From: Orbicella franksi
Lineage: Eukaryota
Assembly: GCA_964199315.1 (NCBI GenBank)
Contig: OZ116707.1
Location: forward strand, 8,122,001-8,186,000
DNA: 64,000 bases
Reading direction: 5' to 3'
Under the pieces are notes generated by a model. That model worked only from the letters and a program-made list of their open reading frames with translations, was not told the origin of the DNA and made no database searches. Numbering within the stretch: the stretch's first letter is position 1; the number at the start of each line of letters is the position of its first letter. Positions 45,153-48,466 of the stretch are shown in pieces. A program made the translations under genes and the position numbers.

Positions 45153-48100
45153 CTAACTACAATATACTAAAAAGCTTAATGAAAATACCAGTGGCTCATG
45201 AAACATAGCTGGAGAAACCTGGATTCCAGAGCCCTTCCTTGTAGATTCTTGCAGCCCATCATACATGTACCAGTTATTCTCAAAATAAACAATACAGATA
45301 TAGTGGCCACCATTCCAAAGTGTTACTCCATACAGTTTAAAACTTTTCCCAGATACTGAAACTGAAAGTGGTGTATTTGACAGTTTAAGATAACCTCCTC
45401 TGCTCAGTAGGTCAACAGAAAACACAAGAAATGATTTTAAATTCAACATCGAACGAGAGCTGCTCACCCTCACACCCACACAATGCCATGACATGTTTGT
45501 ATTGCCATTTTCATCTATTGTGACATCCTTGCTGAAGAGGGTTCCTTCTGAAGGCTGGCTTCCAAATTTCCTTCCACAGTTAGAATCTGGTGGTTGCAGC
45601 CAGTCATAAAGGGCATCCAGAAATGCACTGTTATTGATGTACTGGGAGGGTTGTGGCAGTATTACTGACAAAGATTGGACTGTGTGTACTTGCAATGGGC
45701 AAGTATTTAGGCAGCAAGTTGATGTGATGATGCTTGTCAGGTAGGGACAGAGGAGCATCAAGAAGAAATCCCCTTCATTACCATACAAATCCAGGGTACC
45801 AGCCACAACTGGAAATGCGAAAAGGAAAAATTGCCGTATTGATCATTTATATCATATTGATTATCCTTTTTTTTGCTTATTATCATGACTATAAACATTT
45901 TAACATAATAAGACTTCTGAACAAACACCCATGTTTGTTGTTCAATTATCCTTATAAAAAATAGCGAGGCATACATACCTTGCTGTTGTTGTGGTAGAGA
46001 CTGCAGTATTAACAATTTTGCATCTGCATACTGGCCATCATCTATGAGCTTCAGTGCTGCACCTATTGTATGACCTGATTCTGGAAGGTCCTCGAGCTTT
46101 ACTTTGTTTGATTTAATTAGGGCCTGGAAAATAATTAGCCAATTATCCAAAGGACAAGTATTGGTAAGTGTCACTCCAGTACTTGTCAGTCCACCCCAGG
46201 GAAAAATAGTTAGCTCGTGATCTTGTTGACTAGCAGATTTAGGGTTACTGGCTGGACCAGTAACCAAAAGAAGGAGAGCTTCTGCAGCACTGATTTCTGC
46301 TTGGGTATATAAGCTGTCAGCAGGAAAGGGTTTTTCAGACTCTGTGACAGATACTGGCAAATCAGATGCTGTGGTTTCACACAGGCCAGATAGGGATGCA
46401 GGTGACACAGGTGTTACAAAGACTCTGCTCTTAGTCGCTGATACAGATGCAGGGGGTGCATTAGGTTCTACAGAGCCAACAAGTGATGCTGAAGAAGTAC
46501 ATGTGGTAGGGGTTTCACCCTCAAAGCATCTGTCAGGTGATGCAGGGGATGCATCAGGTTCCAGGGAGCCAACAGGTGATGCTGAAGAAGTACATGTGGT
46601 AGGGTCTCCAAATTCCAAGCAATTGTCAGGTGATGCAGGAAATGGTTCAAAAGAATCCAAACAGTCAGCAGCCTCAGCTAAAACAAATGGCACTAGATCC
46701 CTGGGGACACGCATTTCAAAGATTTCTGGGGCAATAACACATGTCCATAAGGCCGTGAGATTACCCAAAATCTCCTGAATGAGGGGTTCATCCCTTGGTA
46801 TCCTTTCTACGGAATCAGGACCACTTGCAGCATGTAGAATAAAATCACAATACTTTCTGTCAGTGACGAGAAGGATTTGTTGACACTGATAGTAATAGGC
46901 ATGTGAACGCTTCAGGATACACTTTCCATCCTCTACCTTAAAACACTGCCTGCTGAGAACACTTTTCACAACTTGGGAGGTGGGAGATGTCACTGTCTCA
47001 ACACTGTACTGTTTCAAGAGTTTTAGAGATTTAATCTCAATAAGTGTCACTGCCAACCAGACCATCAAGAGAACAGCCAAGGAATGGAAACTTGGGGTTG
47101 ACCCAAAACCCTGATGGGTGGACTTTCACATTTCGGACCCTCTCGTACTTAAGTATGGCCTTTGGTTCACATTCAAGGCCATAACGCATCCAGTATGTCT
47201 GGAGATGTTCTGACTCAGGTCTCCAAATATCAGAAAAAATAAATTTGCTTGCTTCTATGGCTGCATTTGGCTGACACTCAATGACAAGTTTTCCAACTTT
47301 GAAAGCAAAAAGACACTTAGATGCTGTCAATCTGCACCATCTTTCAGAGAACCATTTTTCAGATTTACTTTGTTCTTGTGTTCCTGGGATTTCCATCAAG
47401 GCTTTAGGCTTCAGATTTTTATGTAAGGCACTCACTTGCTCCAACAACACTCCTTTTCTCTCACAATCAAGGTTGTAGTCACCATAGGTGTACTGGAGCT
47501 GAGTTTCCCACATTGAAACTCCTTTACCCTCAGCTTGTGAAAGCCATTGCAAGTTACCCAGAAACTTGTTTATGTGGTGCACATTGACATTTCGATATTT
47601 AGCTGGCCTCGGATCGAAATCAATCACAGGCAAAATAGCTTGCTTTTTCTTTCCAGGGTATTTGGCATCGCTTAACCTCTTAGGATTTTTGTTCCTCTTC
47701 TTGCCTTTATTCCATGAACATTCTTGGCTTGTGCATGGTTTTGTTAAAACTGTTCCATGTTTCTGAACGTAGTCAAGTACATAAAATAAAACCACTACAA
47801 CATGACTACAACGTCCCAAAGACGAAGCCCGGCAAGGTTCAAATGAGGCATGAAGAACAGCGCCCTGTTCACAGATATAATCACAACAACATTGTGCGGT
47901 AGCTCTGTTCTCATCGAAGGCCAAACATGCACTCTCACAAAATAGTGATCGGCGTTCTGCGTGTCCATCACATCGTGTACAAAGCCTGAATCCACGTACT
48001 TCCTTCCATTTTTCATTGGCTTATCGGTCACATGTCCCAGTCCATCATCGATGTCTGCTAGATCATTTGCAAGCGATTCTAACGCATAGTAATACACGTG

Positions 48101-48466
48101 GCCGTAGTTAAAGAGAGAAGGAATGCAATGAGATGGAAAGTCCCGCCAGCTGGTCGACGGAATAAATGGCAGCGAAATCGAGCTTCCAGTCGCTTGTATC
48201 TGCAGACTTTCTTTAAGAACCTTGGCAGCGAACCATTTACCATTGTCAATGCTTGCATCGAGCGTGTGGTGATTCCCACACTTTATGCAGTCGGTCACAC
48301 GTTTCACAAGGTCATCACATTTACCGCTCAGTTTTAAGCCCCTGCACTTTAACCACCGTTTTAGCTGATCAACAGTGTATTCCTGTGGATCTCTGTGAAA
48401 TTTAGAACCAGGAACGTCGTCGTCCTCGGTTAAAACCGTTAAAGATTGAAGCAAACTGCTTGCCAT
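45153..48466 (-). pseudogene. ISL2EU ORF2: SAP - SWIM - YqaJ nuclease - 31-aa repeat - USP-like cysteine protease; one intron, two frameshifts
   Basis: SAP YTVDQLKRWLKCRGLKLSGK; SWIM-like EPCRASSLGRCSHV; YqaJ WFSERWCRLTAS..GLECE..FLGCSLDG..EIK..YYYQCQ; Cys box TNTCPLDNWL; His box GGHY..WYMYDG. Intron 45978-45809 is GT-AG, phase 1, and joins in frame. Confidence 0.8.

Follow-up and report, generated by a model that had tools for sequence, protein, structure and literature searches.

A decayed copy of an ISL2EU-type DNA transposon lies in the 64,000-nucleotide stretch of the Orbicella franksi genome analysed here (hereafter the window), and its second open reading frame (ORF2) belongs to a protein family in which a nuclease is joined to a C-terminal domain with the fold of the ubiquitin-specific proteases (USPs). 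The explanation that we favour, and that taken as a whole appears probable, is that the intact ORF2 product of ~950-1015 residues combines a SAP domain, a SWIM-like module, a lambda-type 5'-3' exonuclease and a linker with a USP-fold isopeptidase.

Integrity of the ORF2 fusion

Relatives of the window element encode this architecture in undamaged form. The proteins P0206-P0212 and P0214 (943-1015 residues) possess SAP and YqaJ domains by Pfam together with a USP-like domain that is covered over 98-99% of its length when the C-terminal domain of P0125 is used as the query. P0214 is a single uninterrupted ORF of 3,048 nt found on seven contigs from different samples, and 427 near-identical sequences are grouped under P0212. 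In P0124-P0131, likewise, one intronless ORF encodes YqaJ, linker and USP-fold domain. Because intact single-ORF relatives encode the whole architecture, the SAP-SWIM-like-YqaJ-USP-fold fusion is real independently of any repair of the window copy. In the intact relative L003 the element (7919-13262, 5,344 bp) is situated between host ABC-transporter and G-protein-coupled receptor genes, and its transposase gene adjoins the ORF2 that encodes P0214. The initial annotation had considered that the C-terminal exon might lie outside the terminal inverted repeats (TIRs) in other copies; ORF2 including its last exon lies within the element ends in the window, in L003 and in L007, and the exon is therefore internal to the element in all three. 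The named sources of the relatives are all cnidarian (Desmophyllum, Stylophora, Nematostella, Porites, Actinia, Acropora and Paramuricea), and cluster look-ups for 20 matches returned cnidarian names only, plus one nematode name.

In the window ORF2 is a pseudogene on the minus strand (45153..48466; ~1045 codons), distributed over open pieces in shifting frames at 48466-47795, 47924-47037, 47080-45758 and 45806-45153. The four in-frame pieces are stop-free and total 1045 residues, close to the ~1050 predicted from the sequence in the initial annotation, which had proposed two frameshifts (~47870 and ~47040) and a clean phase-1 GT-AG intron at 45978-45809. Tblastn with intact relatives as queries placed the changes of frame at 47867/47864 and 47046/47044, and a gap from 45989 to 45809. 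The first frameshift (47864..47865) corresponds to one base fewer, and the second (47042..47043) to two bases fewer, than in copies of ~98% identity; these copies, recovered as contigs from RNA libraries, have one additional base after 47864 and two additional bases after 47042. Moreover, P0157, which is 96-98% identical, is open across the site of the second frameshift.

The 170-nt intron (45809..45978, minus strand; GT at 45978-45977, AG at 45810-45809) proved to have the predicted boundaries and phase, and its removal yields the junction ...LPQQQQ-V-VAGTLDLYGNE..., which is colinear with the intronless relatives. Those relatives, such as P0132 of L007, which is one ORF, are ~170 nt shorter at the intron site when the DNAs are aligned approximately. 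An interruption at this site is also present in the diverged copies P0216, P0157, P0005, P0006, P0014, P0031, P0049 and P0077: the ORFs of P0216 and P0157 read ...LPQQQQ and ...LPRQQQ respectively and then run into junk that begins with G-T, and those of P0005, P0006, P0014, P0031, P0049 and P0077 start with polypyrimidine-encoded F, L or S residues followed by VVAGTLDLYGNE. Between the window and the copies of 98% identity the intron has accumulated three small indels, none of them a multiple of three; the only exon indels that distinguish the window from its nearest copy (contig X8) are those at the two frameshift sites, and the X1 contigs have three further indels in exon 2. In one polyA run, read depth was 3-5x on the flanking exon bins versus 1.5x and 0.2x in the two bins that contain the intron. 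At a three-read threshold no splice joint was recovered across the intron in this run, which was the one with reads here, a second run having none, and the RNA-library contigs keep the intron unspliced. The support for the intron, which is good, thus comes from the comparison of copies and not from RNA. The transposon family as such is represented in the coral RNA libraries, and the sequencing runs in which the window sequence occurs derive from coral samples. A separate set of 10 polyA reads with 8 start sites joins 45336 to 47727 and omits 2,390 nt with the non-canonical ends TT..TG; the most likely source of this joint is transcription of a derivative copy with an internal deletion, rather than splicing.

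At the N-terminus, Pfam recognised the SAP domain (48293..48385, minus strand; PF02037, E 3.4e-6; residues 28-58 of the first piece) and the YqaJ or lambda-exonuclease-like nuclease domain (46670..47354, minus strand; PF09588, E 3.2e-7, its first half being recognised in the second piece), which is split by the second frameshift and reaches E-values down to 5e-16 in relatives. The SAP-SWIM-YqaJ order of the initial annotation accordingly stands for SAP and YqaJ, its middle element being SWIM-like only. This zinc module (SFEPC...GRCSHVV, 47780..47864, minus strand) is typified by a C-x2-C-x8-C-x-H motif, which is kept in eight full-length relatives, and by a following helix as modelled in P0214; Pfam returned no SWIM match at E<=1 in the relatives, and one structural relative in the AlphaFold database is labelled 'SWIM-type domain-containing'. 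The nuclease motif PDG...EIK is invariant in relatives, and the nuclease part of P0214 resembles LHK-Exo (28% identity, template modelling (TM) score 0.72 by target) and lambda exonuclease in Foldseek comparisons, its C-terminal part resembling USPs. The nuclease is followed by a Pro/Ser/Thr-rich, low-complexity linker (46214..46669, minus strand) with a duplicated unit of ~31 residues, the tandem duplication extending over 46465-46650 with the translated pattern SPASPD.C.E....PTTCTSSAS.VGS.EP.A; the length of the linker is highly variable among relatives. The third ORF2 piece (47080-45758) had no Pfam match of any kind. In the full-length model of P0214 the corresponding regions comprise a SAP helix pair, a module of strands and a helix at residues 164-253 that holds the C-x2-C-x8-C-x-H motif, a confidently modelled nuclease at 350-602, a disordered linker at 622-723 and the USP-fold domain at 724-1015.

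Among the eight full-length relatives mean pairwise identity is 0.76 for SAP, 0.69 for the SWIM-like module, 0.60 for YqaJ, 0.48 for the USP-fold domain and 0.25 for the linker, which with 59% gaps is the least conserved region. These identities indicate a clear constraint on the USP-fold domain, lower than that on the N-terminal modules and far above that on the linker. That this domain is an integral and selected part of ISL2EU ORF2 is thus very likely.

The USP-fold domain and its potential activity

The C-terminal domain comprises 296 residues and is encoded in the window by two parts on the minus strand. The first (45979..46213) supplies a PWGG motif and the Cys box, which reads NTC and has its catalytic cysteine codon at 46156-46154; the second (45153..45808, stop codon 45155-45153) supplies four cysteines in the finger region and the His box, with the histidine codon at 45305-45303 and the aspartate codon at 45260-45258, 15 residues past the histidine. 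The boxes and their spacing are located where the initial annotation had read them. The cysteines it had called finger-like are four in number, align with the fingers of USPs and are kept in more than 95% of the family sequences. Compared by phmmer with 1.84 billion representative sequences, exon 2 by itself matched 123 proteins, 59 at E<=1e-10, and the C-terminal domain is therefore not a chance reading.

Domains of full span, 28 in all, were aligned from ISL2EU ORF2, from standalone proteins with a length of ~415-486 residues and from PHD-fused, integrase-fused and long Actinia-type proteins; N22, C24, D27, N28, K70, C111, C116, C156, C188, H247 and Y261 proved to be invariant and D262 nearly so. 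Among 215 family sequences and fragments the cysteine is retained in 111 of 112, the histidine in 119 of 124 and the aspartate in 111 of 116, a degree of conservation opposite to the loss that the initial annotation had named as evidence against a protease. The window copy too keeps the Cys, His and Asp residues and the four finger cysteines.

An AlphaFold2 model built on the 28-domain alignment (predicted local distance difference test score 94.9, predicted TM score 0.89) gave 368 Foldseek matches to PDB at E<=1e-3, and among the matches listed USP-family catalytic domains, including USPL1, accounted for 50 of 50. VIA-align superimposed ~235-243 of the 296 residues on USP35, USP1, CYLD, USP46, USP18 and USP14 with Z-scores of 14-15.8, and found 425 chains at Z>=8. 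The fold comparison proposed in the initial annotation, which could have returned no USP or papain-like match, hence points to USPs throughout. The claim of a USP-like deubiquitinase (DUB) stands in this structural sense, the link to USPs by sequence profiles having failed; as sequence models of USPs were not reached, we term the domain USP-fold and do not assign it to the canonical C19 family. Furthermore, the structural matches do not separate specificity for ubiquitin from that for SUMO or ISG15, because USPL1 and USP18 reach scores comparable to those of the rest.

In addition to ORF2, the same domain was observed in several other settings. One copy (P0122) is located behind an integrase with H2C2 and rve domains, others (P0091, P0101, P0110 and P0224) stand behind a PHD-type finger, and in P0087 from Actinia tenebrosa and P0078 the domain ends long proteins of 1150-1313 residues. 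Clusters of the AlphaFold database contribute further proteins from aphids, proteins from rust fungi labelled 'GCM domain' and one protein labelled 'SWIM-type'. For the standalone member P0033 the neighbouring genes were uninformative.

The domain composition suggests how ORF2 might act. The SAP domain and SWIM-like module would tether the protein to DNA or chromatin and so place the USP-fold domain beside the exonuclease, where it could strip marks of the ubiquitin type at the site of excision or insertion, close to the DNA ends on which the exonuclease works. Histones, repair factors and the proteins of transposition would be candidate substrates, and the outcome might be either a bias towards end resection and homology-directed repair or protection of the transposition complex from ubiquitin-dependent removal. 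On the conserved motifs and the modelled fold, it is reasonably likely that the domain is a catalytically active isopeptidase, i.e. a deubiquitinase or an isopeptidase for ubiquitin-like proteins (UBLs). A specific role directed at breaks or chromatin, drawn by analogy, is distinctly more tentative.

Several observations weigh against this interpretation or restrict it. The window copy is dead: in addition to the two ORF2 frameshifts, the first cysteine of the SWIM-like module has become phenylalanine, the PDG motif of the nuclease has become LDG, with EIK retained, and the transposase has acquired a premature stop. The biology discussed here is a property of the family, which includes members that are intact and abundant. 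A Pfam scan of the 28 domains gave no match at threshold, and the UCH model was matched in only one of the 28 (13.9 bits); in the window it is matched at the His box only and below threshold (E 0.025, 14.6 bits versus a cut-off of 23.9). A profile of the domain (A1) searched against PDB sequences retrieved no USP, its sole match being a chance one at E 0.44. Kinship with C19 is accordingly a matter of modelled fold and motifs, the putative triad is assigned from sequence position, and activity and substrate alike are predicted. Finally, some ISL2EU ORF2 proteins of ~590-626 residues, such as a Rhopilema gene model, show no USP part, and several short ORF2s share their contig with a separate USP-fold ORF (P0174 with P0149; P0143 with P0225). 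This implies that the domain may not be essential for ISL2EU transposition or may sit in an uncalled downstream exon.

An active isopeptidase has two main rivals, both of which are less likely. The domain might be a catalytically silent ubiquitin- or UBL-binding module whose sole task is to recruit the nuclease to repair foci or to chromatin that bears ubiquitin. Inactive USP-fold domains do exist, USP39 and USP52 being known examples, PAN2 is itself found among the structural matches, and the family is highly divergent from canonical USPs. However, pseudo-enzymes usually lose their catalytic residues, and here the Cys, His and Asp as well as the Asn preceding the Cys are kept in more than 95% of the 215 sequences, which span several architectures and 20-70% identity; this renders a silent module unlikely. 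The other rival holds that ORF2 is a polyprotein which its own USP-fold domain, in the manner of viral papain-like proteases, cuts in or near the linker to free a nuclease and a protease, with deubiquitination absent or secondary. The layout, in which a long, disordered and fast-evolving linker separates two enzymes, is indeed polyprotein-like, and most members have P-W-G-G just before the Cys box, USP-type enzymes being known to cut after Gly-Gly. Yet the GG of this motif is variable, with WQHS, WHHD or WNGT in its place in standalone or PHD-fused members, and the motif belongs to the beginning of the domain, which is modelled with confidence, and not to the linker; in the linker itself, 59% of which is gaps among relatives, there is no conserved site of the LxGG type. 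Moreover, the standalone members and the structurally related human protein C14orf28 (see below) would have nothing to process. Self-processing thus appears quite improbable.

A further alternative concerns the fusion itself, namely that a host USP-like exon was captured by, or merely adjoins, one copy and is linked to ORF2 only through the repairs made to the reading frame. The join in the window does require the intron, for which direct splice reads were not recovered. The single-ORF intronless relatives (P0124-P0131 and P0206-P0214) and the position of the coding part between the element ends in the window, L003 and L007 led us to reject this alternative, and the intron site is in addition common to diverged copies; we regard such a capture as extremely improbable. 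This leaves an integral USP-fold domain, and with somewhat less assurance an active isopeptidase, as the preferred reading of ORF2.

The transposon and its transposase gene

The entire decayed element spans 40800..48565 (7,766 bp), its ends being read with the junctions of a related family as a guide. It is bounded by TIRs of 14 nt (40800..40813 on the plus strand and 48552..48565 on the minus strand), with the termini AGCATCTTGCACTA on the left (from 40800) and AGCGCTCTGCACTA on the right (from 48565, reverse complement), each preceded by A-AT. The AT target-site duplications occupy 40798..40799, with an A before them at 40797, and 48566..48567, with a T after them at 48568. In the related family the left junction A-AT-AGCGCTGCGCGGCC (A-AT-AGCGCT...) is identical at three independent insertions (L003, L004 and L005/6). 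The termini of the window element begin with AG, the usual start of ISL2EU TIRs being GG. Internal to the TIRs is an inverted repeat (I3) formed by the motif CCCCCCGCACAGACTCAGACAAACA at 40854..40877 on the plus strand and its partner at 48507..48530 on the minus strand; this subterminal motif (GACCCCCC...AGACTCAGACAAACA) is common to both ends of the window element, both ends of L003, and L007. Between the right terminus and the start codon of ORF2 lies a palindrome TGACGTCA (48543..48550), which resembles a cAMP response element and is kept at the equivalent site upstream of ORF2 in L003-L006. It may be a promoter element of ORF2.

The transposase pseudogene (40982..42595, plus strand) is convergent with ORF2 and has a THAP-like N-terminus followed by a DDE_Tnp_4 domain. 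Pfam recovered the latter at E 9e-41 along with a weak HTH_Tnp_4 match, and the orthologous transposase of L003 has both THAP (E 1.4e-5) and DDE_Tnp_4. The window gene is colinear with residues 1-508 of the L003 transposase, which is intact, in a single tblastn high-scoring segment pair of 56% identity, and translation of the window gene reveals one internal premature stop at 41567-41569. As published, the hallmarks of ISL2EU are a THAP/DDE transposase, a second ORF encoding YqaJ and a duplicated AT within an AATT target (Han et al. 2015, PMC4482050). Since a THAP plus DDE_Tnp_4 transposase is here convergent with a YqaJ-containing ORF2, between AT duplications in an AATT target, the window element is by these features an autonomous-type ISL2EU (PIF/Harbinger-related) coral transposon, present as a recently inactivated copy. 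All three components, transposase, YqaJ protein and AT duplication, bear out the identification made in the initial annotation.

The spacer between the convergent genes (42596-45152) measures 2.56 kb versus 0.53 kb in the intact relative L003, an excess of ~2 kb, and contains small nested inverted repeats at 42792-42926. Given this length and these repeats, the extra sequence probably represents one or several secondary insertions.

Comparison with known systems

The architecture, which the initial annotation did not recognise as described, is apparently undescribed: we could not find it in literature searches, in which no paper dealt with both ISL2EU and a ubiquitin protease, or with both C14orf28 and transposons, Repbase Reports being outside the searched literature and possibly containing a mention. 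As regards the element itself, the coral transposon shares with ISL2EU, a group of the PHIS/Harbinger-like superfamily, the THAP/HTH plus DDE transposase, the YqaJ second ORF, the AT duplication in AATT, the short TIRs and a cnidarian host. The intact relative is 5.3 kb long compared with a published mean of 4.8 kb (PMC4482050), the window copy reaching 7.8 kb. Apart from the AG start of the TIRs and the length of the window copy, the difference resides in ORF2, which as published is a DNA-binding YqaJ protein only, whereas the coral ORF2 adds the USP-fold domain of 296 residues. The functions of the ISL2EU ORFs were stated to be unknown, and the role of the second one is open (PMC4482050); a conserved and probably active predicted isopeptidase fused to an exonuclease provides a concrete hypothesis for it, and suggests that this ISL2EU family might manipulate the ubiquitin or UBL signalling of its host during transposition or repair.

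The closest named relative of the domain by structure is DRIP1/C14orf28. The mouse (Q4KL13) and human (Q4W4Y0) proteins were the best Foldseek matches among the Swiss-Prot entries of the AlphaFold database (E 1.5e-19 and 1.3e-18, respectively), at a TM score of 0.69 and 24% identity over nearly the whole 310-residue protein. A fold search of the ESM Atlas placed chordate 'Chromosome 14 ORF 28' first (TM 0.76, root-mean-square deviation 2.8 over 258 residues), exon 2 alone lies near a 'C14orf28 homolog' cluster by language-model features (0.97), and a sea-anemone fragment that matches the model bears the database name 'C14orf28 homolog'. Because TM scores of 0.69-0.76 and 24% identity compare with ~0.5 and 10-15% for canonical USPs, this kinship is, to judge from the models, specific and closer than the one with other USPs. 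When standalone members were sought with a profile, the search, limited by its requirement for shared words, returned only unnamed cnidarian-type and PHD-fused proteins and did not return C14orf28. Human C14orf28 was classed in 2023 as possessing a previously unrecognised papain-like DUB domain that keeps its catalytic residues, in a paper whose text does not contain the string 'transpos' (PMC10318531). Unlike the coral protein, DRIP1/C14orf28 is a standalone, single-domain vertebrate host gene without SAP, YqaJ or transposon context. The match links a human protein that is still uncharacterised with a family of proteins from mobile elements, and the cnidarian members hint at an origin by domestication, shared ancestry being the alternative.

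A second transposon protein that ends in a USP-fold-like domain, as far as a structural match can indicate, is the 120.7 kDa NOF-FB protein of Drosophila (P16320). It was the third Swiss-Prot match, with C-terminal residues 782-1053 aligned to the model at E 3.7e-12 and a TM score of 0.56; it differs in its unrelated element type, its other N-terminal part and an identity of only 15%. Much of the added interest of the fusion lies in these links to C14orf28 and NOF. It is conceivable, if rather doubtful, that the domain defines a transposon-associated DUB clade (ISL2EU, NOF-FB, and the integrase- and PHD-fused forms), that DRIP1/C14orf28 is its domesticated descendant and that DUB and exonuclease together edit ubiquitin at breaks.

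With canonical USPs (MEROPS C19, Pfam PF00443), for which USP35, USP1, USP46/12, USP14, USP18, CYLD and USPL1 were compared, the coral domain shares the fold, the NTC Cys box, the GHY His box and the four cysteines of the finger region. It departs from them in an identity of 10-15%, in its compact size of 296 residues and in remaining below the UCH threshold. In canonical USPs the spacing from the His to the Asp is 16-17 residues, compared with 15 in the coral domain.

Cysteine proteases of other kinds are known from DNA transposons, namely ULP1/C48 in Mutator-like and other elements and OTU in Helitrons, and the USP fold would join this short list of protease families recruited by such elements. 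As in the coral element, these are ubiquitin- or UBL-type proteases of clan CA that reside in a DNA transposon and have an unclear role in transposition. They differ in belonging to another protease family and another transposon superfamily, and in their fusion partner, which is a transposase or a helicase, whereas the coral domain is fused to a nuclease accessory protein.

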